A DNA stretch of 64,000 nt, from positions 102,673 through 166,672 of the forward strand of contig NIVC01002504.1 in assembly GCA_002269645.1 (NCBI GenBank). Direction: 5' to 3'. This document shows, one piece after another, positions 11,751 to 63,123 of the stretch; the stretch's first letter is position 1; the number at the start of each line of letters is the position of its first letter. The DNA is from Macrostomum lignano (Eukaryota). The notes beneath the pieces were generated by a model. The model did no database searches, was not told the DNA's origin, and saw only the letters and a program-made list of their open reading frames with translations. The translations under genes were made by a program, and so were the position numbers.

Positions 11751-12826
11751 TGTTGTGTTTGCTGCTTGTGGGCACTCAAAAGAAAGTACTTTTATTAATT
11801 GCAGGGACAGTGGGAAACAAGGCGCTACAAATTTAAGTGAAAAATAAAAATTTGTATTCAATATGCTATTGGTTGATTGGTGAAAATAGAACATACTTTA
11901 TTAACACCGTCAAAACAATTCAGTAGTTTCAATTCAATTCAATTCATTATAACAATGCATTGTATGCAATTAGCATATACCAAAAAGATGGGAAAACTAA
12001 CATAGCGAAATCCAAAAACGTGGGGTAAAACGGTAAAACAAATTTGCGGACATTCGATGGAAGATAATTTATCTAAAAAGCTTTTTGTACTATTGTTTTC
12101 ATGCTTTACATTGCTGAATAAATGAGTAAAAAACCACAAAAAAAGCATTTTAAAAGTTTGAGTTGACCAATTTGCAATTGTTTGTTTCACTTTTTTAATT
12201 TACAAACAATTAATTTTAAGACTTGTAGACCTTGGAGTAGGCTAATTTTTTCACTACTTACAAAACAAAAAGTATTCTGTGTTTTACTTTGTATTTTATT
12301 CAAAAAATGAAGAATTTCTAAGGATTTCCAAGTTTTTCTAAAACCACATAAACTGGCCGGCACCACATCCCGTCATCACCAACGAGCTGTCAAGCAATCA
12401 GTGTGCCAGTCCCTGTGTCCCTGTGTGCCAGGACGGGCCGTTCTGACTCGGTCCGGGTGACAATCGCCGTGTTGTGCCCAGCTTGCACGACGAACTCGGA
12501 GAGTTCTGGCCGTGCGCTTTGGCGAGCTTGGTTAACGATAGGGGCGTCCGTCTCAAAGGTCAGCGTCAACGGGCTTCTCAGTTGCCGACCCATCAGCGCC
12601 GAGGGGCTGCCTCGGCCGTCACTACGTGGAGTCGCTCGGTAGTTCAGCGTGAGCTTAGCCAGGTATGCGTCAAACTGTCCTTGATGAGCTACAAACGCTT
12701 TGAGTCCTCGCTTTACAGGCTGCAACATCCGCTCGGCGCAGCCATTGGACTGCGGGTGGTACGGCGACGTGAAGAGCTGATTGTAGCCGAACCGCTCCAG
12801 CCAGCCTTTAACCACGAGAAGACTGA

Positions 12827-12942
12827 TGGTAAGCAGTGCTTACCATGGCCCAACTCAACTTTCTGCCGACCAGAGTAATTTAAATTCTATGGCTAAATTG
12901 GTAGTATCCGTTCTTGCCGGATATGGTAAGCACTGCTTACCA
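12827..12942. promoter_or_regulatory. Two 19-bp palindromes TGGTAAGCASTGCTTACCA near the left piggyBac end
   Basis: Copies at 12827-12845 and 12924-12942. A binding-site role is inferred. Confidence 0.7.
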
Positions 12943-13337
12943 TGAGTATTCTAGGTTTTCTTGTTTTCTGACAATTATAGGCTTTGTATTCTACATTCTC
13001 AATTGTTTCCTCAGTAACGTTCCTTTGTGCTTTGGTTCAAAAACACACGTTTTGTTCGAAGAGGCTTCAATAAAGTTTGAAATCGAATTTACTAATAACA
13101 GAGTTAAACAACAAAAACGAGAATGAAAAACCTGATAATATTCTGGCTGATCGAACTTACTGCGCATACAGAGCGTACGGCTCGTGCACTACAGAAACTA
13201 TAACTAGTGAAACTAATATAAATTATCAAGAGTTGTGAACTAATTTGAGCTAAAGACAAGAGCCAAAAACAGTAAACAGAAAGGATGAAAACTTTAGTTT
13301 TAGCGGAAAGTGAGTCCATTCTGCCGATGCTCGTACT

Positions 13338-14411
13338 TTAACGCTGCGAATGCCAGCGTTGGAAGCAATCTAACAAACAAAGTCCCGGGCATCCTGGACA
13401 TCGGCTGCAGAAATAAACTGTGCGCCGGGAACTGGCAGAACTGTAGCACATTCTGCACCTTTTCGTTGGTCTGGGCTGGGTAGAACGACCTGGGATTTTC
13501 TCCGGAAAATGCTGCTCAGGGACTGCAACTGTTTGCAGCATGGAAGCCGGTCGCTTCCTGCCATTTCCAGTTCGCTCTATCAAATCACGGATGCTGGCTT
13601 CGAGATATCTGATAAAAGTATTCTGGCCACCACACTTGCAGTACAGAACCCAAGCGTTGCGCACCATTTGAAGGCACATATGCAAACCCAGCTTGTGGAA
13701 CCATTTTTTTGTTTTTCTGCCGGCTGCAGGGTGCCGTCCAGCGTGTCCACTCCACCCATGCAGCGATTGTAAGTTATCACACTGCGGCTCTTCTGCACTG
13801 CCACATGCTGACCAGCTCGATTGATCTTGACTTTCTCTGCCTTTGACGCAACGTCCTTCGTGTCCAGCAAATACAAGGTCTTGAATCCACTCTGCTTTCT
13901 CTCGACAGCCTTCACAATCAGAACACGTCCCTTCCTCGCAAAAGCTACATTATTCAGAACCACTAAAGCCTGCCGAAGCTGAGCCGGAACTCCTCGGTCT
14001 GGCCTCACGGTGCCCGTCAAGAACGTTGAATGGTCGATAAGGAACTGGGACAACCTGTATGATGTAAACCAGGTGTCAATTGAGGCCAGCAGTTCTGGTA
14101 AATTCAAAACATTCTGTCCCTTCATCGGACCCAGGCTCGACAAGTCGCCAAACATTCTCAACTTCAGCAGCATCACCATCTGCAAACTCCTGTTCTTCCT
14201 TGCCGTCAGGCCCTTCTATGGTTGGAGGATTGCCATCCAGTGCTTCTTCGCCAACCTCCTCGCCAGGCTCCTCGTCTATTGTTAAGTAGGAGTCGAGGCT
14301 TGCTTCACTGTCAGAGGTCATGTAGTCGATCTCAGAGGCAGAAGCCATGTACTTTAGGATATCAGTGAGTAAATACTGTGTCAAATTTAGCGAGAAAAGG
14401 CTAACAAACAA
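13338..14411 (-). pseudogene. piggyBac (PGBD4-like) transposase, internally deleted and frameshifted
   Basis: ORFs 14076..14411 (acidic N-terminus), 13580..14185 (second and third catalytic Asp motifs) and 13338..13685 (Cys-rich domain). The region carrying the first catalytic Asp was not seen. Confidence 0.8.
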
Positions 14412-14484
14412 GATGGTAAGAGTGTTACTGTAAGAAAGCTAGTTTTACTACAAAGGGGACTTGCTGTCTGAGCACAGATTTCTA

Positions 14485-14668
14485 TGGTAAGCAGCGCATA
14501 CCAAGCAGGCAGCAAGTGAAACTGTTTTATTGGCTAAAGCAGTAGTGCTGTTCATTTCCTTCCCGTCTAGCGCGTCAGTTTGAGCCAAGCTGGATCAGTA
14601 AGCCTAGCCGGCAGGAATGGAAGTGACATGCTATGCCAGAAAATATCTATGGTAAGCACTGCTTACCA
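14485..14668. promoter_or_regulatory. Two copies of the same 19-bp palindrome near the right piggyBac end
   Basis: Exact copy at 14650-14668; degenerate copy TGGTAAGCAGCGCATACCA at 14485-14503. Confidence 0.7.
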
Positions 14669-17592
14669 AGCAGACGGGAACAGACAAATTATGGATTCTG
14701 GTTAGGCAGGAAGAGGTTAAGCCCCTGATCGTGGAACTCTGGTGCGTTGTCAGACACCAGAGTGTGCGGTACGCCTAGCCTCACGAAGATGGCCCGTAGA
14801 ACTCGAATCACTGTCCTCGCGCTCTTGTCTGCCACGTGTACGGCTTCCGGCCAGCCAGAGAAAGCGTCAACCAGCACCAGGATCAGGCTGACCCCCGACA
14901 CGTGAGCATTGTGTGTGTGCACCCGCTTTTAAGGCGTCTCCTCGATAGGCCACGTGTGCACCGTGCGATTGGGCAGTGGTTGGATCCCCGCACATGTGCA
15001 CTGCTTCACAAATGGTCCTACACCATGTTCAGCGTTCAGCTCTGTCTGGACGACCTTCGGAACCTTCAACGGAGTGCCACCATCTGTAACTCTCCAATTT
15101 AAAATGGTGCAAAAGCATTGTATATTATGCAAACATGCCTGGTTTGGTGCCTTGATAGAAAAAAAGGATGTTGGCGGTTTCAGCTCGTCGGGGCCGCGTG
15201 GTGGCACTGCTTTAAATGTCCTGAAGGTCGCCTGTATGTCCACAGGTCAGCCTAGAGGAATGAATCGTCTGTTTAATTCACCGATTATGTCTACTGACTG
15301 AATGCTGCGTGCAGAAGAGGATTATTCCATTTCAGTTTTAGGAACGCAGCCGTCTCTGAGATGCCAATCAGGTGCTTTTGTTGAAGGTCCCGACGGTCGC
15401 CGCCAATGCTTTAGACTGTAATGAAGGGGACCCTGGTTCCTGGGATACTGAGAAGAAAAGCCTCTACGACTGATATGCATAGTTTTTTGAGGCAAAGTTA
15501 GCAGAAAAAATTAGCCATTGTTGGTGGTTTTTGCCACGACACCCCGAGGAGAACCGTTGAATATCTCGACGATGCCGATTTTTCGTGATTCTTAAAGTTG
15601 ATTCATCGAATAGAGCGGAAAATGTTAGCCCGTGTTCTGGATTTTCATGGCAATTGGTTACATCTTTTTGGAGATCCAGACAAAGGAAAAATGCAGTGTG
15701 TATTTGAAATACACCCTATGGTATTTCTACTGTTAAACAATTCAAGTGTAAAAATTACTTACAGGCTAAGTCCCGTCAATTACTAAAACAGTGGAATGCC
15801 TATATTTACCAGTATTTTTAGGATAAATAGTTGGATGAATACGAGACATTGTATGGTTATCTGTGGCAGACTCGTAAAATAGTACGGTTCGTCGCAGCTT
15901 ATCTGAAAATTTCACCTGGCTGTTTAATTCAGCAAGTCCTATCACGTTGATTAGCTGCTTCTGCATAAATGTCATTCTGTCCAAAGCAACGCTATATCCT
16001 GTAATTTAGAGCCAGCTTTCCTATCCTATTCCAGGTTCGCTTACAGAGATTTTGATATAAGAAAAGGTGGGCTTTGGGGCCTCGCTTTTTTACTCATGCT
16101 TAGAGTTCGGATACCACTCCACTAGGAAAATTCTACACATCTGGCTACACATATGGCCCGATCGGGGCAGGCATAATTATTTATTTTTCATTATTCGAAA
16201 AGAGTCTGTAAAGATAGGTAAAGATTGCTGTCGGCTTCACATCTGTCTCAATTTTAGGATGGACCGCAACTGTCCATCCTAAACCGCTCGTGCGAACCGC
16301 TCCTTCTGAGATGAATTTATTCTAGGCTGCTCTACAGATTCTAGATTTTTAGTTTCAGGTTCCTGATATTCGATATTCATGTTCACTTTGGGCCGAAAAC
16401 AAGACAGTTTCTATTTGATCAATCAACTAGGAAGATTGAAAAGTAATATCATTTAAAAACAATGCAAGTGGCCACAAAATTTATCATGCAACTGTAATAT
16501 TTCCTGAATTCGTCCGTACTCATAAGAGAATTAATTATTTGGATATTTTTCGATATATTTTATGCAACCTTAGATAGGAAGTGCTTATTAAATAGCCCGC
16601 ATAAGATTTAACAGTTATTAAAAATTGCTTTACGAACTGTAGTACCTATTTAGCATTACCATTACGAGTATTTTAAGGAAAAGTGATACTGTAAAATACT
16701 TTAATTCATAGGCATAGGAACTGCTAGTTAAGTAGTCTGCTAGTTATAAATTTGGCCCTGGCCCCTAGCTCGTACATATCTCGAAACCGATAGGAAATTG
16801 CGTTCGCCACGGCACGGCTCCGGCAACTGAAAATAATAACGGAAATTGAAGAGTTTCAAAGTAGCATGTGAAAGAGTTGGAGACAGGGAAAGATTGAGGT
16901 CCCAAAAGTGCAAAGTAACAGGTGAAAGACTTGGAGAAAGGGAAAGATAGTGCACAAAAGTGCAAAGTAGCATGTTAAAGACTTGGAGACGGAAAGATTG
17001 AGCTGACAAAATGACATCATTTTTGCCTACAAAATAAAGCAACAGTTGGTCTGCATCGCGCGCATTGTTCAATAGTTGGCTTTTAGTGCTAAGAGCTAAA
17101 GAGCTAAGAGCTAAAGCTTAAAACCTCACGGTGCCTTCTGAAAATTGGCATAATTTATGCCAGAGATGAGAGATATATTCTGTAGAGTTGAAAATCAAAT
17201 ACATGTATGTCTATAAAATAATAGATCAAGTGTTTAAAACAACGAAACGGTCATATGAAACTTGCGTCTAGCATACTTCGTAGGAAATATAAACCATATA
17301 CTCGTAAATGGATTAGTAGTATTCTGTAGGCTGCTGAACTCGATGCTTGGACAAGATGGGCGAAAACTAATGGCGATTAATTTGCTCAAGAATGAAACTA
17401 AGCTTCCGTTATTTGTCACACCCCTCCACTAGAGTGCCTACTACTCGTAGTATGTATCTGTAAGTTCGTGATAGCGGAATCCCAAAGTCGGTCGGTCGTA
17501 CACCACCCAATTTCATCACTACACAATGCGCTTAAGCAAGCCACGAGATTCAATAATTCAGACAAAGTATTTAGCAAGGTGTCATGGTAAAG

Positions 17593-40995: not shown

Positions 40996-41812
40996 TTGCT
41001 TCGCTGTTAACCGGCGCTAGAGCGCTAGACTTGGAGAAAGCTCTCGACAAGTCCTCACGAGGCGGTTCTGAGGAAAAATCAGACAAGCGGGCCTGCATTC
41101 GTTAATATAGAACGCGGAGGGTGGAGCGTTTGGGCATTCCGTGGCTTGACCATGGAACTGCAGCCCGAAAAGTGCGGATAATGATGCACAACAGATATTG
41201 ATTAAACATGGGGGAGAAAGTAGCTTGTACGAAGCGCCGACAGTCGCCTCAAGCCACTAGTGACAATAGCATGCCAAATTTGGGCTTGTGCGCACAAGGC
41301 AGCACGTGAGGGAGGGTTCAGCTCCAGAGCATATTCCCAGGCTAGCCAGACAATCCACTACACAAAAAATACGTGGCTAGCAGGTGGCAGACAGTGGGTC
41401 CACCTTGGCTAGATTGCGTCAGAGCATAGCGGCAGCCAGGCAATCCTACACAAAAAATGGCTCCACCTTGGCTAGGCTCCACCGTAGAGCCCATATTCCC
41501 AGGCCGCCAACATGAGGCAGCAGTTTCCACGCTAAAAATGCTTGTTGACGGGCCCAGCCAGCGGCTGTGGAAAAGCAGACGCCAGATTGACTCGTATTGG
41601 TTGGCAAGATACATGGCACTAAAAAAAAAAAAAAATTTTTGACGCCATCGCGTGAGATCTAAATGCATTGACCTTGTCAGGGCAAAAGACGCCCAAAGAA
41701 ATTGCTCCGGTATATTAAAATCGGCGCCCCAAAAAGTAGGCAAGCTGTATATGCTGCAATAGCGGCGAGAACTTGATCCTGCCCAATTTGGTTGCCAAGG
41801 GCGCAATGAGCG

Positions 41813-49885: not shown

Positions 49886-52725
49886 AAGCGTCACAGCGAT
49901 GATTTAGGGATCGTTGCGCTAGTTATTACACTTGGCTTAGACCACCGGAAATTTATTTGTAGTATAACAAATGTAATAATTTATTGATAAAAAAAACTAA
50001 TGCGATCGGTGGGTTCTGTTTTAGGAGAAAAAAATACGTTTATTTATTGTATTTGCATTTTATTTTACTAAAATACTTAATATGCCTATCTTATGTGAAC
50101 AAACTAACAGCCGCAAATCTAAAACAGATTTTTCTCGCGCTGCGTCATTAGTTCTCCTAGTGTTTCTTTGTTTACCATACCATAGCTGATGCGTTACATC
50201 GGCAATAATTTTTTCTTCTAGCTATCATAAAAGCTATGGCTGATGTGTGTGTAGCCACGTATCCGCTAATCGCATAGCTTTTTTGTAATATATTAATTAT
50301 TGTGTAAATATTTGTGTAAATTGTGACGTGTAGTTTGTAATATATGTAATTTTTTGTCATACATCATTGTGTAAATTGTGACGTGTAGTTTGTGTAAATA
50401 TTGATACAATAGTAGTATGTGATGAAACTGACTTGCGAATGACCTGTCGACCTGATTCCTGGCACTTTTTGTGCTGAAATTGAGACGAGAAGGCCTTTCA
50501 AATCTAGATATATATTTGCATGAATTTAGTTATACAACTAGAGCATTATGGACATTCATTCAAGCATACAAACAAACCTTAGAGATTTAGTATATTTAGA
50601 TTGTGTAATAATATAATATAGACCTTCAAGTTTGTAGGCAGTGCATAGAGCAAGGGCCAATAACAAAAAATAATATGGTGATCCTGGCTACTTCAAATGA
50701 ATACCTTCTAGAGATTTGAGGGCTTATTTGTGATGAATTAACTGATGAATCTGTGACAGTGACACAGCAACTGTGACCAGAGTATTAAGAATTTTAAGCA
50801 TCCTAGGGACCTAGATATGCTTGTCATATGTCAGTGACAGTAGATCTCATTTGTTGCTAGACAGCAGGTTGGTTGAAGTACTACTTCTTAAATAGCTAGG
50901 TAACAGCATTGCTCTTAGGCTACAGTCCCACTTTGTATTTTTCACCGCACACCTTACACTTAAATAATGTTTTCCTATATGCACCTTGGAGTCAAGAGTG
51001 GAATATATAGTGAGTAGGGCCTATGTCAGGTGGCTCATTCCAGCCAGATAAGATAGACATATTTGGAAAATAGTAAAAAGTCAATATTTTGCTCACCATT
51101 GCCTTGCTAGCTGATTTTTCTGCCAAATGTTCTTTATGTATAATATAGGCCTATACTAGCATACAATCTAAAAATAAAGGCAATTGTTATTTGTCCAGTT
51201 ACTGGATTATGACCATGCTTTCCTATTCATCTAGTTAATACTGGACAAATAGACATTTTGTTATTTGTCCAATTAAATTAATAATGCTAAAAAATCTATT
51301 TCATAGAAACTACAAGGATAAATATTCCTAGACTTTAAAGACTTCTTATTTGTATCTTGATTATTAGTTTATTATGTTGTTATACTAGTGTGTCTGATAT
51401 ACAAAATTATGCCAAATTGAATACATTGCTTTGCTAACATTAGTATATAAGAAAATATTAATTAATATACAAGAAAAGGTCTTAAAAATTTAGAATATTC
51501 ATCATAAAACAAACAGATACTTGTGTTAGCAATTTAAGCAGACAAATAGCAAAAAGGCTATTTGTCCAGTCATTGGACAAATAACAAATGCCAAAAATGA
51601 ATGGTAAAATGTTGGATTAGTATAATATCAGTTGGCAAAAAGCTATTTTTATAAAAAATTGGACATTTTTTTAAGCAAAAGACATCATTAACTTTGTGTA
51701 CCTTTTGAAAACAAATAAAAAGCTTTGGAAGATTGAAACAAACTATAGATAAAATTATAGTATTTGCATAATTAGATATAAACATTAATGGCCATATAAT
51801 CTATTAAATTTTTAATCTATTGGTAATTCAAAGTTAGTGAATTGACAGAAAAAAGTTAAAACCATAATGTTATGACCATAAGGCTGCCTATTCTTTTGTA
51901 CCTTTGTTGCCTTTAAATAAGTTTAAATATTCTAATAAAAAAGTATGATTTCTTTAGATGTTCTTAGTCAAATTAAAAAACAGAATATCAAAAATGATAA
52001 ATGTTATTTAAGACTTTTATCTATTAGTTTCTATATGTTTCTATATTGTTATCAAGCCTAAGAAGAACTTTTTCAGTGCATGATTCTGTGACTATAAATA
52101 TGTAAATATAATATTCATATAGAATTCTTTTTGTTAGGATAAATAATATATATTTATATATTATAATTTATTGGAATATTCCAAATAAAATAAAACTGAT
52201 AAAAACTTTGTGGGCATTTGTGTTGTGGCTCATTAAACTGCAACTATTAAAACAAAAAATATACATCTAAAATTTATAAATTAAAATCAAAGAGCCACTA
52301 TATGCAGGTAGGCCTACCCTTTTTCATAGACATAAGGACCCAGAAAAGACTTGTAAGAAAATACAACAATCAAGAATACAAGATGAAGTGGAAAATTTAG
52401 AAAACATATTCCAAAGCATCCCAATTACACCAAATAATAATTTAAGCTGCTTATTATATACTTATAAACACAACTCAATGCAATATGGCTATGGATAACA
52501 AATTATAGACTATAAATCTGCTAGATTTTAATCAACTTTAATCAAATCAGCTGATGCTCCAAGCCAGCCACTGCCTGAGCTGCAATGCCTGAGCAGGTTG
52601 CCTTGCAGGTGGCTGAGCAGATGGCTAAGCACCTGCTCTAAAAAGACACTGATATAGATAAACACCTTTTGAGCTTAGCATATGATGTAATATACAATTC
52701 AGAATGATCCTCACGAATTTCAGCA

Positions 52726-55507
52726 ATGATTTCGTCAAGAAAACTAAATGCGAAATCGAGAAAAAGACAATCTGAAGTAGTACTGATGACTGGCCAACGC
52801 GGAAGGCCAAGGATATTGCGAACGTCTAATGCATTGGAAAGTACTACATCGATTGCCACGGCTTCCTCGTGTTCCACAGTCACTGGCGGCAGTCTTTCAC
52901 AAGATCTGGGTGCAGGAAACCATGACTCTATGCCTGAACAGATTAGTAATAAGTTTGAACAGCCGCCTAAATTCACGGAATGGGAAGACTACACGGCCAT
53001 TGTGGAAAGTTACACTGCCGGTTATAAACAGTCATTCGAGTTAAAATGCTGTGTTCGTTGCGACATGCAGCCTGGAGTTTTCCGATGCGTTCATTGTCAG
53101 TACGATGTCTGCAGTGATTGTAAAAAGATAACGCATGGAAATTTTGCTGCTCACAAGTTCCTCCAGTGGAATGTAAGTTGTTTTAAAATCTAAATTGCAA
53201 TTTCTAAGGATATTAGTTTACTGTGAAGAAAACAATGACGCCTATTTGGCAGTATAACGCTGTATTAAATTTGACGTGAAACAAAAGTATTTAGAATGCT
53301 AATAGCCTTAGTACGGAATAATATTTTTATAACACCGCATACAAAATTTAACCCTTTTTCCTAGGCTCAATCGCTAATGTTTGAAGACATTCAAGAAGAA
53401 GAGCCTGTCTCTCTATTCTGCTGTAGCGAATCAAGCTTGTCTTCTGAGTTTACAACATCATCCGAAATTCAGATTATTGACATCAACGGAATTGTTTGCG
53501 CCAGAATTTATACGTGCCAATCCTGTGATAAAGTTGATGCCATGCTAGCAAAAGGATACTTTCCTGGAAGCGAGTCACGCGTTGGCGAATTGTTAACATT
53601 TTTTTCAATTAGCTTTCTATCAACTCTTGACTCCTTGTGCTTTGACGGTCAACTGCCACTGTCTCGTGCAATTACCTGTCTTTTCAAAGGCTCCGTCGTA
53701 GGACAAGGTCGCTGGAACCCTGGTTTAGCCGATCGAGTGTATCAGAGATTGCAGCGTAATGGAGTCCTACTGCGGTTTCGAGAGTTGCAGAGGTGTTCAG
53801 CAAGCTGGCCTGCTAGTTGTCTTTTGTGTCCTGACCAAAATTCAAGTCGGAAGTCTGTAGTTTGTGCTGATGCTCTATTTGGATGGCGAAGACTACAAAG
53901 TATGGGTTCGAAGCAACGTCTAGTGCCAGATTCTGAACGCTCATTGCCGTCACCGCTTATTCATGTAGAACCAGCAACTGTACCGCCTCCTACGACACAA
54001 GTGTCTGCAGAAGGCTGCACTAACTGGAAGGCTGGAACAGAAAAACCCGTGATCAGGGCCAGCAAGCACGATGTCAACGGTTTCTTTGGCTTATTTTGCC
54101 GGCATAACAGGCTTCTGACAGGTTGCAACATTATTACAGCTGGTGAGGGCCTGTGCTATCCAGAACAGACTCTTCGTCATTACCTAATGACACAGCCCGT
54201 CTCAAAGGATCTCATTTTTATCTATGATGTTGGTGAGTTGATTTTTATCGTGTTTCTATCATGCTGCACTTATTTACACTATACACTTATAGTGTGTGCT
54301 TACTTATGCTTGTGCTTACTTATGTACGTGCATGCGTACTGCGACACGAAGCTCAATTATTTATTCATTTAAAAACTTTTTCCTAAAATCAGGTTGTCGC
54401 ATTTCCAATCGTGTCAAGTCCATGGTGTCAGCATCTGGTGTACAGCTTAACAGTGTCACGTGCGCTGTGAACGCCTTTCATGTGCTGGGCCACGAGAGAC
54501 AATGCCAACTAAAGTACTCCGTGCGGGTAACTCCTGGAGCGGGTCTTTGCGACGGGGAGAATACGGAGCGCGCTTGGTCTGCACTACGACCGTTTGGTAA
54601 AAGCTTAAAGTACATGCGGTCCGATCGCAGAAGTGCTTGTATGTCTTACATTTTGCATTGCTTCAATGCTAATCAGTTGTTGTACGCCTCCAATTGGTTT
54701 TCTGCTCGATTAAAACTAATAACTCGCACAGCCGCGTCTTGTTCAGCTGAAATGGAGCAATTGCTTCTACAAGCTGGCGATTTGATGCGGAACAACAAAT
54801 TAACTATTCCTGCCGGAATCTCTGAGGTAGCCATTTTAAATCTTGCTCAACAATGGCATGCAGAAGCCATAAATCCCAATAGCGACTCTCCATTGAGCAG
54901 GGAACCTTACGCAAAGCTTAAGGCACTTGCTTTGGAACGATTCTATTGGATCCGTCAGAGTGGCTGCTCAGATGGACAAAAAGAAAATCGAGCATGTCTA
55001 CGCAAGGTTGCGGCTTTAAATGCAGACATTCGAATGGCCGCCCGCTCGCTTCCGCCAGGCCTTCGCGTGCCCACTATGATTCAGCTTCGCGACTTCCAGT
55101 CAGACTTCTACTTCGGTCTTTCGATCGATGTGTCTGAGAGGTTCAAGCGACGGGTGGTTGACTTGTATCACAAGCTGAATCGTCTAGCGGAGGAAAAGAT
55201 CATTATTGTGCAAGAGTGGCGTGACGTTCAAATTAAACTTGAACAGCACTGTGAAACACTCCATCATCAACCTGGATTGCCAGCCCAGTTTCGATGCCTC
55301 TTTCAGACTATTTTAAAGCAACTTCAAGCTCTTCGCTTTGATCACATTGACGCAAGCATTGAAGCTGCTGCTGCTGATGCGCAGCATCCAAACGACGCTG
55401 GTACCAACGTAAATCAGCCAGATGACGTTGAAGCCCCGAGTCATTCAGACGTTGAATCAAGTCGTGAGCAGTCTGAGTCAGATGAAGAATGGATTGATAG
55501 TATTTAA
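52726..55507 (+). CDS. KDZ (Kyakuja-Dileera-Zisupton) transposase, 3 exons (52726-53172, 53365-54232, 54393-55507), 809 aa, apparently intact
   Basis: Canonical GT-AG introns in consistent phase give one open frame. It contains a B-box-like CVRC..FRCVHCQYDVCSDC..THGNFAAHKFLQWN, a CxC region, CADALFG, CTNWKA, GLFCRH, FIYDVGCRI (built across the intron), AFHVLGHERQCQLKYS and GAGLCDGENTERAWS. These are the KDZ D/D/H/E motifs. Confidence 0.88.
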
Positions 55508-55670
55508 TTCCGAAACTCGATTACTTGAAACTGTTATCCATAGGATAATCATATTTCGGATGTAAACTAGCTTGTTTACATGAAATTCTAAACCAGTTTA
55601 TAAACGTATACCGATTTCTCTTAGAAATTTACTGTAAAGTTTACAGCCTACCAAAGTAAGCAGTATTTCA

Positions 55671-55962
55671 GCTTTCAAAAAGCTGGCCGCTTTGCATTTC
55701 TTGCTGTGGCTTCCCGCTCTTAGTGGCGGGATTGATCCTTAGTTCAATGCTGCAAAAGACCGCTGTGCACTGTTTACTGTGCTGTGGAATTTGTTTTGCT
55801 CTGCAAAGTGAACTATGGATTAACCCCCTGAACGGTGTTCGGCCTCTTCGTGGCTCAGGGGATCCACGATTCACTTTTAGAATCGGCTAACTGAGCACCA
55901 TTTTTTCTTGTTCATTTTTCTTTTATACTTCTGTTAACAATTTTAGATATTTGCTTCACTGA
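55671..55962 (+). repeat. 292-bp direct repeat, copy 1 (downstream of the KDZ stop); structured and ends in a branch point/polypyrimidine/AG
   Basis: Read as identical to 59650..59941. Confidence 0.95.
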
Positions 55963-56640
55963 TTGAAATTTATAACTACGAGCAACTTTCTTGAATGTGT
56001 TTTATTCTCTCGTTTGTATTACTTAATATTTCATGCATTTATATGCAGTCGCCTGTCGTTGCAGCGAGAGGCGCATATGCGTCTTACTTTTGTCCCTTTT
56101 CGTTGTACTACACTTTGACACTCACTGCAATTTGTCAGTTCTCTTATGTTAGCCTGCGTTTAGACGCCCGCTATGCCAATAGTATATTTGCATACTGCTT
56201 CAAAGATAGCGCGAAAGTATAATAAAAGTGGAACTAGTAATCGTGATATACACATTTTTGTCTTTTACTTTTGTTACGTGTTAACCATAAGCAATAGCAG
56301 TGACCCATCCCGCCATGCACTCATTATCCCATTTATAGCAGCACTTTAGGCTTGGCTGGGGAGATTGAAAATGTAACTGCCCACACTAACTAATGGCACC
56401 CTGCTTGGCCTGTAGCCTTATTGACTCGGACTCGAGGGTTTCAGTTGAGAGGAAAGGATGTTCATGTTGGAAGATAGACCTGGTTCCGATCAGAGGATAG
56501 GAGATTCAGATGTGAGATTCAGAATTTTTTATACTCTAAAGCATTTCCTCTCCGTCATTGTCTTAGAATACAAAAATTAAGACTTAATTTGCCTAACCTC
56601 CCTGGAAGCAGTATAATAATAAGCCCACAACGTTTTCCCG

Positions 56641-57258
56641 ATGCTCTTGAATGTCACCCGCGGGACAATGTCTCACATGGTGCAGGTTCATACGCAGATT
56701 TCCTGTTTGATCTGCAATGCTTGGACAGGACGCGCATCTGGTTTCAAGGTACATTGCAATCGAAAGCACCCTGATGCCACTGAAGAGCAAATTGATGCCA
56801 CAATCCGCCTTTTTGGACTTTTAAAGGCAAAGAAGCGAACCGAATCGGGTTACCTCTATCAGTGTCCTGTTTGCAGTGTTATCACTTCGAATTTACCAAG
56901 CCATGTTAGGGTAAAACATGGAAAGCAATCTAAGACAAATGGAAATTCGCAATCTACCTATAACTTAGACGAGGCTAAAGAAAACGCTGAAGTTTTAATT
57001 TCTAAGCTGCAATCACTAGCCGCCAGGAACCCCTCCGAAAAGTGTGCCGATTCACAGCTCTCCGGTCCAAGTGTTTTACGTTCAAACATTTTCAATTGCC
57101 CTGATAGCCATTGTACATGCCCCTGCCACAGTTGTAGTGTAACTACGTTAGACAATGATTTCAATGGCTTTTTTAATCCAGCTTCTCCCAGCGTTTCGTT
57201 GCAACAAAATGCAAATCCTACAATTTCGAATTCCGTTTCACTACTCGATTTGCTTTAA
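56641..57258 (+). CDS. Double C2H2 zinc-finger ORF; probable first exon of the SET gene, or a separate gene
   Basis: CLIC..FKVHCNRKH and CPVCSVITSNLPSHVRVKH. The splice donor was not firmly identified. Confidence 0.65.
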   Translation: MLLNVTRGTMSHMVQVHTQISCLICNAWTGRASGFKVHCNRKHPDATEEQIDATIRLFGLLKAKKRTESGYLYQCPVCSVITSNLPSHVRVKHGKQSKTNGNSQSTYNLDEAKENAEVLISKLQSLAARNPSEKCADSQLSGPSVLRSNIFNCPDSHCTCPCHSCSVTTLDNDFNGFFNPASPSVSLQQNANPTISNSVSLLDLL

Positions 57259-57543
57259 AACTTCAGTGTGACTGGCAACCTAATGCTACTATGCAGAAAT
57301 TCGGGACTGTAATGCGTTATCAAGTCCGTTGTATCGCCCAACCTTTCAAATAAACATTTGATTTGATCTGTTCAGCTGCCTTTTATTATTGTCCTGAGAC
57401 TACGAGCGAGCGGAACATGCCTTCTTTGCTTTCAGTCTGACAGTCTTTAAGAGTGCATTGTAAAGTACCTATTACCAAGATGCCTAGTTCATTCATCTTT
57501 CACCGTAGTTAAAGGTTTCATTTTGATTTTTCCTCATTTTCAG

Positions 57544-59581
57544 AAAGTTTGCGCGACACGTTTTATCGAGAACTAAATTTTACTCTAAACGTTTACGTTG
57601 AAAACTTGAATCAATTCAATATGGACCCTGACCAGTTTATTTGCCCGATGTGTGACTATTCCACCAATCGGTCCGCCACCCTCCTTCGACACGCTCGAAG
57701 CAAGCATACAGCAAACTACGATCGAGTCGAAGCCTACATTCTCTACAAACGTTGGCATGGCAAAAGAGATTTAAAGCTTTGCCAGCTGTGCAGCTCATTT
57801 GCCGCCTCTAATATGAGACAACACATGCGGCTGTGCCATTTCGGCGAAGCATTTGTTGTCGGCCGTGCAGCCGTAGCTGATGCGAGGGCAAGGGCATATG
57901 ACAGAATTGAGGGCCTGCGGTTGTTGGCCTTTTACGGCATCCGGCCTCAACTAAATCTTAATCCAGCCTTGCCGCTTGAAAGCCTGCCGGAATCTGCCGC
58001 CGCTATAACAATGGACGCGGACTTAGCTACCGACGCTGAAATGGCGACCTCCAATGAGGTGTGTTAAACTAAAATTTGTGTCCATGGTTTTTTGTTGTTA
58101 AAACGCTGCGGCCTGTAACCTTGAAAGCATCAGGTCGCGGGTCAGGTCAGGTCGCAACTTTTCTTAAAAAGTTGAATGTTTGGTAAATTTGAGAAGATGA
58201 AAGTGAAAAATGAATAAATAAAAGCTTTTAGATACTTTGCTCAAAAGGAAATATTAGGGATTAACAACAAGGGGTGGGTCTTTTATGCTGGTCCATGGTT
58301 TATGGTGTAGAGCAATTATCTTACCATCAGCTGGGTTGCATGTATGTTTAATGAAAATAACAAAGGGTTACGTTCATCTTTAATTGCATGTTGTAACCAT
58401 TATGATGTACTTTTTTCTTCACTGTCAGGTTCCCCTTAGCGTTCGGCTCCAAAGAGGAGAAGCCAATAAAGATGGCCTGTCCAATGATCCGCCTTTCGAG
58501 CCGACTGTGACTTCGCCTGAGGACTCAAATAGCCACGCTGCTGCGGTTGCCCCTCCTGCAATGGCAGCTAATCGCGAGCTTCTGGTCCCGGAGTCTGCCG
58601 CTGCTGCAACTATAGACGTCGCCTTATCTACCGACGCTGTACCGGCGACCTCCAATGAAGTAAGTTGGTCAAACTAAATGAAGTCCACAGTTTATTGTGT
58701 GAAACAGTGTTCTTAGGAACAATTTTGTTGCATGTTTATTCAATGCAAAGATTAAAGCGTTGGGGTTAATCTGCATTTGTATGCCGTTACCACTATGAAT
58801 CATTTGTCCTCTTCATTTTCTTCACTGTCAGGTTCCCCTTAGCGTTCGGCTCCAAAGAGGAGAAGCCAATAAAGATGGCCTGTCCAATGATCCGCCTTTC
58901 GAGCCGACTGTGACTTCGCCTGAGGACTCAAATAGCCACGCTGCTGCGGTTGCCCCTCCTGCAATGGCAGCTAATCGCGAGCGTCTAGTCCCGGACACTA
59001 TCACAACTCCGGACGGAGCATGCACGCCGCTCCTTCACGTGACGCCTCACGGCCGAGCTAGCCGTGGGAGTCCAGAGCGATCCCTGCCGACCGAAATGGC
59101 GTCTATGAGGCAACTCACTATGGCCGATGTGGTTCGACAGACAATGATTTCTACCGGCAACGTCGTGGTTCAGGCCGGTAGCGTCGACGCAGAGGGTCTG
59201 GGGGCATTTGCCCGTACGGACCTCCCAAAAGGCACTGTCGTCTGTACTTACGGTGGAGAATTAATCCAAGGACAAAAAGCACGCCTCGCCCGGGAGGAAG
59301 ATATTGTAAAGCAAGGGAAGCCATGCTGCTTCTTGTTTTTCTTTTCCTGGCGAGATCAAGCTTATTGCATCGACGCAACCAACACTTTCCAGTACGTCGG
59401 TCGGTACATTAACCATAGCCGGCGAAGAAATAACTTGAAGCCGATTGTTGCTGATGTAAACAATAAACCGCATCTGGTCTTCCAAGCCATTCGAGACATT
59501 GCTCGAGGCGAGGAGCTACTCTACGATTATGGAGAAAGGCGCTCGGATGTGCTTCGACTGCATCCGTGGCTTAAAGACTGA
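57544..59581 (+). CDS. C2H2 zinc-finger plus PR-Set7/SETD8(KMT5A)-like SET-domain protein; exons 57544-58058, 58429-58659, 58832-59581
   Basis: Phase-compatible AG/GT borders. Fingers CPMCDY..LLRHARSKH and CQLC..MRQHMRLCH. SET domain GLGAFARTDLPKGTVVCTYGGEL..YCIDAT..GRYINHS..N..PHLVFQAIRDIARGEELLYDYGER..HPWLKD; the terminal HPWL is typical of the H4K20 monomethyltransferase family. Confidence 0.88.
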
Positions 59582-59649
59582 AAGGCTAAGTTTATTCTCT
59601 GAAACCATCAGCCCCCGTTGCATGGGGAGTTCGCTATAAGATTTTATCG

Positions 59650-59941
59650 GCTTTCAAAAAGCTGGCCGCTTTGCATTTCTTGCTGTGGCTTCCCGCTCTT
59701 AGTGGCGGGATTGATCCTTAGTTCAATGCTGCAAAAGACCGCTGTGCACTGTTTACTGTGCTGTGGAATTTGTTTTGCTCTGCAAAGTGAACTATGGATT
59801 AACCCCCTGAACGGTGTTCGGCCTCTTCGTGGCTCAGGGGATCCACGATTCACTTTTAGAATCGGCTAACTGAGCACCATTTTTTCTTGTTCATTTTTCT
59901 TTTATACTTCTGTTAACAATTTTAGATATTTGCTTCACTGA
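59650..59941 (+). repeat. 292-bp direct repeat, copy 2 (downstream of the SET stop)
   Basis: Read as identical to 55671..55962. Confidence 0.95.
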
Positions 59942-60074
59942 CCTACATGTATATTATCTTATAAATGGCTTTTGCTTCTATTTCAGATACTGCTGGTCTA
60001 GATATGGTGCATTAGTGCAAATGTGCCATGGTCTGTTTGCTACATGATGCAAAAACTTATCACAACAACAGTCC

Positions 60075-61600
60075 CCGCGTGTCCTAGTTTGACCCATAAC
60101 AGCTCCGTGTCCTCAATTGACCCTCAACAGTCCCGTGTCCTCATTTGACCCCTAACAGTCCTGTGTCCTCATTTTACCCTTATAGTTCTGTGTTCTCATT
60201 CGACCTCTAAGAGACCTTTTGTGTCCTTTAACCTCTAGAAGTCCTGTGTCCTTGTTTGCCGCCTAACAGTCTCTTGTCATTTCTTTCGCCCCAGAGATTC
60301 GGCAGCACTACGAGAAACGCCTGCATCGTGTGGACGACCTCCAGATGGACCTGACCAATCTTCGCATGCAGCTGCAATTGCAGGTCCTTGCGGAGCGCGA
60401 TCGTTCGGCTAAACTGCGCTTCATCATTCGGCGCCGCTGTTGCCGCGCCTGCCAGCAGAGCCTTCGAGTCGAGCCGTCTGCTCTCGCCAGCAGCTGTCGG
60501 CAGCCGTTGTCTTGGACCAGCCTCTACTCGACGCCACGGCCGCAGCCGCCGTCGCCGCTGCCGCGTCGATGGCCACCGACTCTTTAACAACAACTCTGCC
60601 GCAGCAGTCTTCGACGGAGCAGGCGTCGTCCATGTCGCCCAGTCTTGGCGATCTCGGCGGCCGACCCAGGCGGGCCAATCGGCGACTGTCAAAGGCGCTG
60701 ACGCTGCCGCCTTGTTCCGACGGGGTGGTGCGCCGCCTCCGCCGCCGCCGTCACAACTGTTGGCCAGGTAAGGACAGTTGACCCCTGCGCACTTTTTTTG
60801 CCCCAAATAACCTCTGTCTTCAATGACCCCACGGTAGATGTTTGCCCTCAAATGATCTTTACGTATATTAGTTTGTCCTCAAATGACCTCCAGATAGATT
60901 CTGTCCTCAAATGACCCCTGGGTAGACTTTTGTCCTCAACTGACCCCAGGGTTGATTTTTGTCCTGAAATGACCTCTGCTTAGAATTATTGTCCTCATTT
61001 GACCCCTTTCCTATTCTTATCTCTCGCGCAGAGACGCCTGAGTGCAGGGGAGCCGCAGCTGCGCGCCCGTTCCGGCCGTCGGCGATACCCGGCATCGGGA
61101 GCGACCGGCTCTGACAGCCAGCAGCAGCAGCAGAAGCAGACGGTGGTGGCTAGAAAAATTTATTTGCCACTGGCGAATACTACCGGCGCTGCTGTGTTAG
61201 GCAGCAATACTATGGGTAGTAGGACTGCTGCTAACGCTGCTGCCGCTACAACCGCCTTCGATGTGGCCGCTTGTTTAGCCGCATCGCTGGCTGGGGGCAA
61301 CGACGATAGTCGAGACGGCGAGACCGACTCCCGGCTAGGCTATAATCGATCGGTGAGCTGGGAAATTTTATCAACCCATGTTAATGTATGACTCACCACT
61401 TTATATGCGTGCAACTAAACATGTGATACCGTCATGATGTTTGTGACCTTAAATGACCAATACTCATGTCCCTAAATAACCCCTTGTCTTGTCCCTACAT
61501 GACCCTGTCCGTGTCCTAAATATCGACCTTTCATGGCATATATTTCCTCATCCTTGAATGACCTCATTTATCATCATCTCCCTGTCCTCAAATGGCCTTT
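60075..61600. repeat. Degenerate 28-30-bp minisatellite (TGACCCYYAACAGTCCTGTGTCCTCATT) in three intronic blocks
   Basis: Blocks at about 60075-60260, 60780-61010 and 61440-61600. Confidence 0.75.
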
Positions 61601-61787
61601 CAAAAACTCGGTCGCCACCCCTAACCTGCAGGCCTCCGCCGATCCGAAATCCGAGGACGACCTCGATCTTGATGTCAAAGTGGATAACGATGACGAAGAT
61701 TACGAGGGCGAATTCGACGCCACACTGTCTGGTCACCAGCAGCTGAACTCGGAGCCGAATTTCCGGCTGAATTCGTCGATTATTTAA
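60295..61787 (+). CDS. 3' exons of a probable host MAP3K12/13 (DLK/LZK)-like gene (about 60295-60768, 61033-61390, 61632-61787)
   Basis: After CCCCAG| the frame reads EIRQHYEKRLHRVDDLQMDLTNLRMQLQLQ, similar to the DLK leucine zipper [20 protein letters not shown]..LQLE. Low-complexity exons follow, ending ..NFRLNSSII*. There is one apparent frameshift near 60450, and no kinase exons are in the window. Confidence 0.55.
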
Positions 61788-62682
61788 AAACTGCACTAGC
61801 ATGCGCTTGCACTACTGTCCTTAAGTAGCTAGTTGTAGCTGTTTAACTATTATCTGCGGTGTCGGTCTGTTTATGGACTTTTTCAATTTTATCTGTTATT
61901 TTTCCATCCCTCACTTTTCTCTCGCTTTGGTAGTACGCTCGTAAAATATTTTTTATCGTTTTCTTATCAGTGCCTCGTTTAATTTTACCTATAGCAGTAG
62001 ATAGTGCCTACTATTGTATTTTTTCTCTTCAACTTTATTACTTTAATTGTTGGTCTTTTAACAGTTTTTAAATTTGGTTGGGCAGACAATTTTCAGCTTA
62101 ATCTTTTTTGCGGCTGTTTTTTTGTAATTAGCTTGGGCGTCTTATCTGTGACAAACAATATAAAGAAATATTTTATGGACCAATTTATAGGCTGGCGTCT
62201 GTTTTTACTCGCATTCTGCAAATACTTGTTTCTGCCTTCCCTGTGTGTTTCAGTTTGTAGGGTTTCTCTCAGACATGCCGTCTGACAGACAGACAGACAG
62301 ACAGCGCGCTTATGCTACAGCGTGTCAAAAGTGCGCGCCTCTGCCAGTGCGCTCTTGTGCCAGTGTGCGCCTCTGCTAGTGCGCGCTTGTGCACACAATC
62401 ACAAATTAAAAGTAAACATTTTTAAAGCTTTACATAATCACCTTAGTATAAGGATGAAGACCTGGATAAAGTAGAACAGGGCAATGGAGATTCCACCGCT
62501 CAGTAGGGGCAAAATGAACCAGGACGCCACTGAAATCGGATAAGTTGTATGCGCTGCTGAAGTGAAGATAATACTGGCTTAACTACAGCTTGAATGAGAC
62601 TGTGCTTAGATACCAGCTCGAAAACTGAGTCTAAAGCCGTGCAAGGTATTCTTCAAACTGATAAAATATCAAGTCCATCTGA

Positions 62683-62830
62683 CCCAAGAATGCTCAAGCC
62701 TACCCAATAATCTTCCATGCTGACCCAAGAATAGCCTCACCCAAGAATCTCCTATCCTGACCCAAGAATCTTCCATGCTGACCCAAGAATAGCCTCACCC
62801 AAGAATCTCCTATCCTGACCCAAGAACCTT
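62683..62830. repeat. Compound minisatellite on an ACCCAAGAAT core
   Basis: About 8 ACCCAAGAA units, including a higher-order duplication. Confidence 0.85.
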
Positions 62831-63123
62831 CATTCTGCGGAAGACACCGACTGGCACGCTCTAATGATCTGTAGAATCTCAAATCTGAGTTTATTACTAC
62901 AGCTTGGCAATTCCTGATTGATTTTCCCGAATTCCCCCATTTGAATACATTAGAATTTTTCGGAATCTCCGCCATTGAATATCTGGAAAGCTGATTAAGC
63001 TAGAGCCTCAAGCACTGCAGAGGAAAAGTAGCAAATATATATTATTCGCGATCCACTCTGCAAGATCTCTTTCAACCTGAGTTATTTTGTTAAGAATAGC
63101 TGCGATAACTCCAGTGCCAATGG

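Follow-up and report, generated by a model that had tools for sequence, protein, structure and literature searches.

The 64,000-nucleotide stretch of DNA from the flatworm Macrostomum lignano analysed here (the window; positions are counted from its first letter) probably contains one copy of a young, autonomous transposon of the KDZ (Kyakuja/Dileera/Zisupton) superfamily, the cargo of which consists of a gene encoding C2H2 zinc fingers only (ZnF-only) and a gene that joins such fingers to a SET domain (ZnF-SET). As delimited by comparison of sequences, the unit spans at least 22.7 kb and comprises a left end, an 8-kb array of 20-bp repeats, the transposase gene, the ZnF-only gene and the ZnF-SET gene. 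A first-pass annotation had placed the system at positions 52726-59941, which hold the gene part only, the unit starting about 11.4 kb further upstream. Its parts are as follows (ORF, open reading frame; MITE, miniature inverted-repeat transposable element; TRF, Tandem Repeats Finder).

41325-41812, + strand, left terminus and subterminal region, beginning 5'-CAGAGCATATTCCCAGGCTAGCC, the start shared by the window and the loci L001 and L004
41813-49893, + strand, tandem array of 20-bp repeats, about 8.1 kb, unit GGCGCCAATTTGAGCTT(T)CC, with a higher-order repeat of about 158-159 bp (TRF)
49894-52725, + strand, spacer from the array to the KDZ gene, AT-rich by composition, holding a MITE-like inverted repeat at 51179-51592
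52726-55507, + strand, KDZ transposase gene, 809 aa, three exons (52726-53172, 53365-54232 and 54393-55507)
55668-55962, + strand, first copy of the 3' module R, 295 bp, 160 nt past the KDZ stop codon
56641-57258, + strand, ZnF-only ORF, 205 aa, two C2H2-like fingers and its own stop codon
57544-59581, + strand, ZnF-SET gene, mRNA start at the AG acceptor 57543/57544, ATG at 57621
59647-59941, + strand, second copy of R, 295 bp, 66 nt past the SET stop codon

The three exons of the transposase gene have GT/AG borders and join in frame, so that the intact 809-aa protein reported at first pass stands. The spliced protein scores 118.7 bits against the Pfam KDZ profile PF18758 (cut-off 26.6; E = 3.9 × 10−34), a match that makes it a member of the KDZ transposase superfamily. 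Its D/D/H/E positions are likewise kept, as had been reported: D318, D385, D437, H468, H472, D492, E494 and E497 (window numbering) are invariant in comparison with the transposase of a sister lineage, P0006 (BOX15_Mlig001681g7), and the candidate catalytic columns are at least 90% conserved in an alignment of 12 KDZ proteins. The N-terminal region gives 15-17 bits against CxC1, under the cut-off of 26.9, and a B-box-like match of about 18 bits, also under cut-off. The window protein is identical to the GenBank protein P0177 (BOX15_Mlig004599g14) at locus L014 and 97% identical to BOX15_Mlig022522g1. A profile search of 1.84 billion representative proteins returned 1513 KDZ relatives, only 11 of them at E ≤ 1 × 10−30; the closest were nearly all from M. 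lignano, and the seven longest carry ULP-protease or CxC domains, with SET in none.

Linkage of the transposase to the cargo was compared across copies. All examined copies of the window's own lineage (lineage 1: window/L014, L001, L004, L005 and L015; 6/6) have the order KDZ, ZnF-only, ZnF-SET. The sister lineage (lineage 2) encodes P0006, which is 47% identical to the window KDZ; downstream of its gene, on the same strand, come a ZnF-SET gene (300 aa) and a ZnF-only gene. There the order of the cargo is swapped relative to lineage 1 (KDZ, ZnF-SET, ZnF-only, at L002 and L007); at L008 and L009 KDZ and then ZnF-SET run up to the contig end, and at L006 KDZ stands without SET. The pairing of KDZ with ZnF-SET is present in 10 of the 11 copies examined, in two lineages, which upholds the mobile unit of the first-pass annotation with three genes in place of its two. 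That annotation had also named KDZ copies lacking SET as an argument against the pairing: SET is held by these 10 of 11 near copies, and four more distant M. lignano KDZ lineages (L003, L010, L011 and L012/L013) have no ZnF or SET within 10 kb.

The homology among the lineage-1 copies in the window, L001 and L004 starts exactly at window position 41325 (5'-CAGAGCATATTCCC...), with unrelated flanks upstream. The lineage-2 copies L002, L006, L007 and L009 all start with 5'-CAGTTTATGGCC..., again beside unrelated flanks. The left boundary is therefore identical in seven copies (three of lineage 1 and four of lineage 2), always with CAG first, and because these copies break at the same nucleotide beside unrelated flanks, the unit is, on sequence evidence, mobile and multi-copy. 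Proteins with at least 90% identity to the lineage-1 KDZ were found on at least 9 contigs, and the corresponding figure for the lineage-2 KDZ is about 7-8. Within a lineage, copies differ by 0-2 substitutions per 2430-bp KDZ coding sequence (CDS), the remaining differences being single-base indels typical of the sequencing method and changes in array length (1.7 kb in L001, 2.9 kb in L004 and about 8.1 kb in the window). The sharp common end, differing flanks, near-identical copies and intact transposase together look like the profile of a recently active DNA transposon. In fungal Kyakuja elements the termini are 5'-CA..TG-3', terminal inverted repeats (TIRs) are absent and the target-site duplication (TSD) measures 7 bp (PMC12730594); the flatworm unit looks Kyakuja-like in its termini, with a 5'-CA start and no inverted repeat found.

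The left region and the array are shared between the lineages. The array unit is GGCGCCAATTTGAGCTT(T)CC in lineage 1 and GGCGCCGATTTGAGCTTTCC in lineage 2, both lineages having 6.5-8 kb of array with a 158-bp higher-order repeat; the lineage-2 array at L002 851-7319, likewise upstream of KDZ, is about 79% identical in unit and higher-order repeat. The distance from the left boundary to the array is about 490 bp in lineage 1 and about 365 bp in lineage 2. A conserved upstream block of about 250 bp occurs in both lineages, window 41563-41757 being 81% identical to the sister-lineage left region. The left subterminal block of L001 (360-602) and L004 (2159-2401) is 92.7% identical to that of lineage 2 (L002 616-860), the corresponding value for window 41563-41757 being 80.7%. 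These values suggest that left ends have been exchanged between the two lineages. The spacer measures 2.7-2.8 kb in both lineages and is not alignable between them. Within lineage 1, the part of the spacer beside the array (window 49894-51383, 1.5 kb) is not alignable with its counterpart in L004 (5330-8659, 3.3 kb), and from 51384 onward the window is 99.4% identical to L004, which points to an indel or replacement inside the element. Window 51179-51592 consists of nested inverted repeats with arms of 28-45 nt (82-100% complementary) and has the appearance of a small MITE or foldback insertion. The possibility that the array and left end form a separately inserted element was rejected, as all copies are colinear across them.

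The gene at the right of the coding part had been described at first pass as two pairs of C2H2 fingers fused to a SETD8-like SET domain. The SET part of this description holds. The domain matches Pfam SET at E = 3.3 × 10−20, and among solved structures its best match is KMT5A/SETD8 (E = 6 × 10−27), followed by 4ldg, a SET-domain protein (5 × 10−17), and EZH2 (about 3 × 10−13). Identity to human KMT5A/SETD8/PR-Set7 (PDB 5teg, 4ij8 and 1zkk) is 38% over the SET domain. The two share GR(L/Y)INHS, EELLYDYG(D/E)R and a C-terminal HPWLK (GRYINHS, ELLYDYGER and HPWLKD in the flatworm protein), and both have a short HPWL flank in place of a Cys-rich post-SET region. The fusion of two finger pairs does not hold: as read from the sequence, the ZnF-SET protein has one pair, because the first pair lies in the separate ORF at 56641-57258 with its own stop codon and the GenBank model starts at the 57543 acceptor. 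In the sister lineage the ZnF-only ORF is positioned downstream of SET and therefore cannot be an upstream SET exon there. ZnF-SET has the exons 57621-58058 and 58832-59581, with an optional duplicated exon (58429-58659) between them, giving 395 or 472 aa from the ATG with frames checked. The model built here is 100% identical to the GenBank protein P0001 (BOX15_Mlig022522g3, Macrostomum lignano), and the RNA-seq-based, 5'-partial GenBank SET CDS starts 2 nt past the AG acceptor at 57543. Among the matches listed for the ZnF-SET protein are two Logan proteins (P0002 and P0003), 41-42% identical.

The ZnF-only ORF is intact in 6/6 lineage-1 copies, and its alignable counterparts are L002 15239-16057 and the N-terminal modules of the ZnF-SET proteins of both lineages; its 205-aa product has no Pfam match. 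The first finger of ZnF-SET scores 27.3 bits against PF13909, marginally above the cut-off of 27. Across the four finger modules (ZnF-only and ZnF-SET, from two lineages each) all Cys/His ligands are invariant in the alignment. The profile search proposed at first pass thus recovers KDZ and SET, one C2H2 finger at threshold, and CxC1 below its cut-off. The linker between the fingers and SET holds a tandem duplication of an exon plus intron (58413-58592 and 58816-58995; 180 bp, 99%), which accounts for the 409-aa as opposed to 486/497-aa isoform models, the latter, in other copies, including the duplicated exon. An older pair in the linker (57987-58065 and 58588-58666) is 80% identical, so that the linker has enlarged through repeated duplication.

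That the SET gene is the flatworm's own SETD8/KMT5A orthologue, beside which a KDZ element landed by chance, is a reading to which we give almost no credence. It would account for KMT5A being the closest solved structure and for the retained catalytic and C-terminal motifs. Against this, the gene is multi-copy and always beside KDZ in a repeated unit, the pairing recurs with a 47%-identical KDZ in the second lineage, the N-terminal C2H2 pair is shared with the neighbouring ZnF-only gene, and the SET domains of the two lineages, at 35% identity, are too diverged for copies of one housekeeping gene. The single-copy host SETD8 that the first-pass annotation had named as the outcome contrary to its proposal was therefore not what was found. 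Because the gene occurs in multiple copies within a repeated unit and encodes a C2H2 pair at the N-terminus, the protein is, by sequence, SETD8-like and not a SETD8 orthologue, and true SETD8 architecture is absent from it, as the annotation had held. Unlike KMT5A, the transposon-borne flatworm protein has a low-complexity linker after the finger pair, and its methyltransferase activity and H4K20 specificity are putative.

Between the two lineages, identity is 47% for KDZ, 35% for the SET domain, 41% for the finger modules of ZnF-SET and 27% for ZnF-only. All three ORFs are open in both lineages, which also retain every zinc ligand along with the NHS, ELLYDYG and PWL motifs. Retention of the catalytic and zinc-binding residues at 35% and 41% identity argues for long-term purifying selection on the cargo. 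Values of dN/dS between copies would be uninformative given the 0-2 substitutions, and synonymous sites between the lineages would be saturated. These comparisons bear on the idea that ZnF-SET and ZnF-only are passengers, captured host fragments that have no role for the element. Such passengers could explain why one copy has lost SET while the rest show no obvious decay, and why the more distant KDZ lineages do without SET; with both cargo ORFs open, catalytic and zinc residues kept at 27-41% identity and SET retained in 10/11 copies, we regard this explanation as very improbable.

The first-pass annotation had also reported that both genes end in the same sequence. The repeat is real (R, 295 bp, 99.66% identical between its two copies), and it lies downstream of both stop codons and is not part of the coding ends. 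Since the copies lie 160 nt and 66 nt downstream of two stops, R is, by position, a 3' flank or untranslated-region module. The sister lineage has one and the same 3' module behind all three of its genes (12466-13042 vs 14299-14889, 591 bp, 97.3%; 12605-12854 vs 16200-16445, 250 bp, 97.6%), and the final 45 nt of the KDZ coding sequence form the beginning of its second copy. In sequence the module has no relation to R, and we conclude from the alignments that the 3' module architecture is conserved across the lineages and its sequence is not. An independent SINE (short interspersed nuclear element) or MITE was considered for R and rejected: there are two copies only in the window, the unrelated module of the sister lineage plays the same role, and one copy of that module starts within the KDZ coding end. 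Comparison of L006 with L007 shows that exactly one module plus SET (1833 bp) is missing from L006, a loss that fits the expected product of recombination between direct-repeat modules. In the window, recombination between the R copies would delete both finger genes.

The KDZ and SET genes are named Mlig022522 g1 and g3. In the M. lignano assembly, clustered transcriptional units carry a common name prefix, and the GenBank models come from RNA-seq transcriptional units cut at trans-splice or poly(A) sites (PMC5730564). Because the models are RNA-seq-derived, the prefix Mlig022522 is shared and the SET mRNA starts at an AG acceptor, we infer from the provenance of the annotation that the genes of the unit are expressed, probably from one precursor transcript that is cut at 57544 by spliced-leader (SL) trans-splicing and polyadenylated in the repeated 3' module. 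A good, in-frame donor in the last KDZ exon (55463/55464, GTC/GTGAGC), if joined to the acceptor at 57544, gives a 1293-aa KDZ-ZnF-SET fusion. The UniProt model P0005 (1347 aa) uses the 55463>57544 junction and presents KDZ, ZnF-SET and downstream low-complexity ORFs (59.5-61.8 kb) as one protein, which may reflect readthrough or a fusion isoform, or may be an artefact of prediction.

The physical and probable transcriptional coupling of transposase and SET, together with this junction, is what speaks for a further explanation, in which the element is mobile and its cargo functional but SET serves transposition, either by marking excision or integration breaks or by methylating a non-histone protein, in parallel with the role proposed for the SET-transposase fusion SETMAR (compared below). 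Methylation of H4K20 feeds 53BP1/NHEJ (non-homologous end joining) repair, and SETD8 acts in replication and in the damage response. By the SETMAR analogy, a role in repair or integration would be a serious alternative, if on balance an unlikely one: the fusion junction is known as a gene prediction only, the P0005 model also skips parts of KDZ, and in the RNA-seq-based GenBank models the genes stand apart.

To the right of the genes, the lineage-1 copies continue into the following features.

59942-63123, + strand, downstream segment common to lineage-1 copies, colinear at ≥99% in L001, L004, L005, L014 and L015
63124-64000, + strand, first part of a satellite (period about 590-610 bp, (TATTC)n runs), inside which the window and the contig apparently end

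The downstream segment holds a small annotated gene (84/98 aa) at about 61193-61769; it has no Pfam match, and its 84-aa ORF was without a record on look-up. A 58-bp repeat (62682-62831) precedes the satellite. The satellite follows the gene region in all lineage-1 copies, with copy number ranging from about 2 units (L015) to at least 9 (L001, 16014-21548), and these copies are colinear through it and for at least about 0.4 kb beyond. L015 extends about 1 kb past the satellite and is the sole copy covering that part.

Several observations weigh against the reading of the unit as a complete transposon with finger-guided cargo. Alignment of the flanks, which the first-pass annotation had proposed for the termini and TSDs, gave the sharp common left end in seven copies, and the right side did not follow. 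Neither an inverted-repeat scan of 40.5-64 kb nor a pattern search for the left terminus in reverse complement, run on the window and on every locus, found a TIR; no right end was found, the lineage-1 copies still being colinear past the satellite; and no TSD was found by searching for the 6-8 bp to the left of each copy's CAG. The only TSD match preceded by TG (L007, 7433) occurs in all copies and was discarded as a coincidence. ZnF-SET, which 10/11 copies have, is located to the right of the left end, in sequence that is colinear between copies. Formal proof of a complete transposon is therefore missing. Some near-identical copies may be the same locus assembled twice, as the M. lignano assembly is redundant, with 180-312 Mb duplicated (PMC5730564), and certainty that the sites differ extends only to the seven copies whose left flanks are visible and distinct. 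The loss of SET from one copy (L006) means that SET is not required for the persistence of a copy. A KDZ lineage without ZnF or SET (L003) also has an upstream 20-bp array, of a different unit, so that the array cannot be assigned to the ZnF proteins. Pfam recognises one of the four fingers, marginally, the other three being identified by ligand pattern only, and an AlphaFold2 model of P0001 with two homologues is uninformative (predicted local distance difference test, pLDDT, 34). Finally, the claim of expression comes from annotation provenance.

The missing right end, TIR and TSD, the near identity of the copies with non-coding DNA included, and the amount of duplicated sequence in the assembly are also what could be expected if the unit were not a transposon, and were instead a block, flanked by satellites, that arose by segmental duplication or mis-assembly in a redundant polyploid assembly, its KDZ, ZnF and SET genes being a domesticated cluster. 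A further point in favour of such a block is that lineage-2 elements form tail-to-tail palindromes, possibly PacBio artefacts. At L006 and L002 (NIVC01001431.1) two lineage-2 elements stand tail-to-tail across 387-bp satellites, L006 15291-17355 being the reverse complement of 22480-20451; the junction recurs on a second contig at L007 (NIVC01000103.1), one arm having SET and the other having lost it, and the outer flanks of one complete tail-to-tail pair hold no matching duplication. Such a pair may exist in the genome as a palindromic dimer, or may be an artefact of assembling long reads. A duplicated block would not lead one to expect seven copies that break at exactly one nucleotide beside unrelated flanks, a boundary that begins with the CA typical of Kyakuja, a transposase retaining all conserved catalytic positions, or array length and SET presence that vary between copies, and we hold it to be quite improbable. 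A mobile KDZ element with ZnF-only and ZnF-SET cargo is the reading that we favour.

For this element, a mechanism can be proposed that takes up the first-pass idea of an enzyme marking the element's own chromatin (anti-silencing or insertion-site conditioning), an idea so far unsupported. ZnF-SET would be recruited to DNA through its finger pair, most plausibly to the element's own sequences, and at its target would mono-methylate H4K20 or another lysine substrate to the benefit of the element, possibly by countering silencing or by aiding transposition or repair. The ZnF-only paralogue would act as a partner or a competitor at the same sites, and the R modules would supply 3'-end processing for each gene. 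The candidate binding site is the 20-bp unit, because it hardly differs between two lineages whose proteins have diverged to 47% identity and whose spacers are unalignable. The array may instead serve the transposase, given that a ZnF-less lineage has one too and that left ends have seemingly been exchanged between lineages. That lineage, a third M. lignano KDZ lineage of about 32% identity (L003, 6348-9910, NIVC01001515.1; BOX15_Mlig007768g1; without ZnF/SET), has a 3.5-kb array of an unrelated 20-bp unit (CTAGCTACACCCTGCTCTCC) directly before its KDZ gene, and at L012/L013 an 11-kb KDZ gene contains several short-unit arrays. Arrays of this kind may be common to flatworm KDZ elements in general. 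A bolder version of the proposal, for which we see a distinctly small chance, is that the element builds a chromatin domain of its own: both ZnF proteins would bind the element's own repeats (for example the approximately 400 20-bp units), ZnF-SET would deposit H4K20 methylation there, and the paralogue would tune or compete with it. If true, such a domain would shield a transposon of more than 20 kb from silencing, or license its replication or transposition, which would make it the first animal transposon with a self-targeting histone 'writer'.

Against locus L014 (NIVC01002504.1), all six compared segments of the window (about 9.6 kb in total) align with neither mismatch nor gap. Because 8493 bp follow the KDZ stop in both and L014 ends with its contig, the window is probably the last 64 kb of that contig. 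Its first 41 kb hold many long transposon-like ORFs, and an ORF fragment at 13580-14185 (− strand) has a piggyBac-type transposase domain (DDE_Tnp_1_7, E = 4 × 10−9). Nine other ORFs tested from the window gave no significant Pfam match, one weak sub-threshold match aside. Window 37150-37301 matches L002 16955-17106 (152 bp, 96.7%), where the match overlaps an ORF (16683-17092) that has a reverse-transcriptase-like motif; the fragment is dispersed, resembles a long interspersed nuclear element (LINE) and is situated within the colinear right part of the lineage-2 copies.

Comparison with known systems places the unit as follows. Fungal KDZ transposons carry TET/JBP dioxygenase genes (Iyer et al. 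2014, as cited in Kojima 2025, PMC12730594), so far as the citing paper describes them. They and the flatworm unit belong to the same superfamily, in both an epigenetic-mark enzyme gene travels with the transposase, and the 5'-CA start and lack of a detectable TIR are shared with Kyakuja. The flatworm unit differs in its host, an animal, in a cargo that is of the SET histone-lysine-methyltransferase type with C2H2 fingers and not a DNA-base dioxygenase, and in its ZnF-only gene, 8-kb internal 20-bp array, repeated 3' module and size of more than 20 kb. In Phytophthora, HarbingerS and MuDR families have genes for SET-domain methyltransferases (Kojima & Jurka 2014, Repbase Reports, via PMC12730594); going by the citing description, they are alike as DNA transposons carrying a SET histone-methyltransferase gene and unlike in transposase superfamily and host kingdom. 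As SET-carrying DNA transposons are known in oomycetes, the principle is not new. SETMAR/Metnase is a primate SET fused to an Hsmar1 mariner transposase (PMC9062482, PMC12062965). It likewise couples SET to a DDE-type transposase, a fusion isoform being possible in the flatworm element. Unlike the flatworm unit, which is multi-copy, apparently mobile and normally keeps its genes separate, SETMAR is a host gene, domesticated and single-copy, the transposase of which is immobile, and its SET is not SETD8-like, matching the flatworm SET far more weakly (3bo5, E = 1.1 × 10−5). VANC proteins of Arabidopsis VANDAL (MuDR) elements are anti-silencing proteins (PMC5735166, via PMC12730594). As they are described there, the likeness lies in the proposed logic only, a transposon-encoded sequence-specific factor that alters the epigenetic state of the family to which it belongs; the proteins are not homologous, VANC is not a SET-type enzyme, and self-targeting by the flatworm protein is a proposal. 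A full-text search of an incomplete library, which did not cover Repbase Reports, found no published KDZ element with ZnF-SET and no animal DNA transposon with such cargo, in agreement with the first-pass annotation, which knew of no described pairing of KDZ and ZnF-SET.

If the proposal is true, a finger-guided SETD8-type methyltransferase in an animal would extend the strategy of an epigenetic arms race to Metazoa and to H4K20-type chemistry; transposon cargo acting on epigenetic marks is on record from fungi (TET/JBP, in KDZ and other elements), oomycetes (SET, in Harbinger and MuDR) and plants (VANC). The cassette structure of the unit, with the same 3' module behind each gene and loss by recombination, bears on how cargo is organised and exchanged in large DNA transposons, on which two further features are likewise informative, the very large array of 20-bp repeats inside the element and the possibility that its genes are expressed from a trans-spliced polycistronic transcript. 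RNA interference (RNAi) and transgenesis are available in M. lignano, and the copies are nearly identical and apparently expressed, so that a transposon writing its own chromatin would be directly testable in this flatworm.

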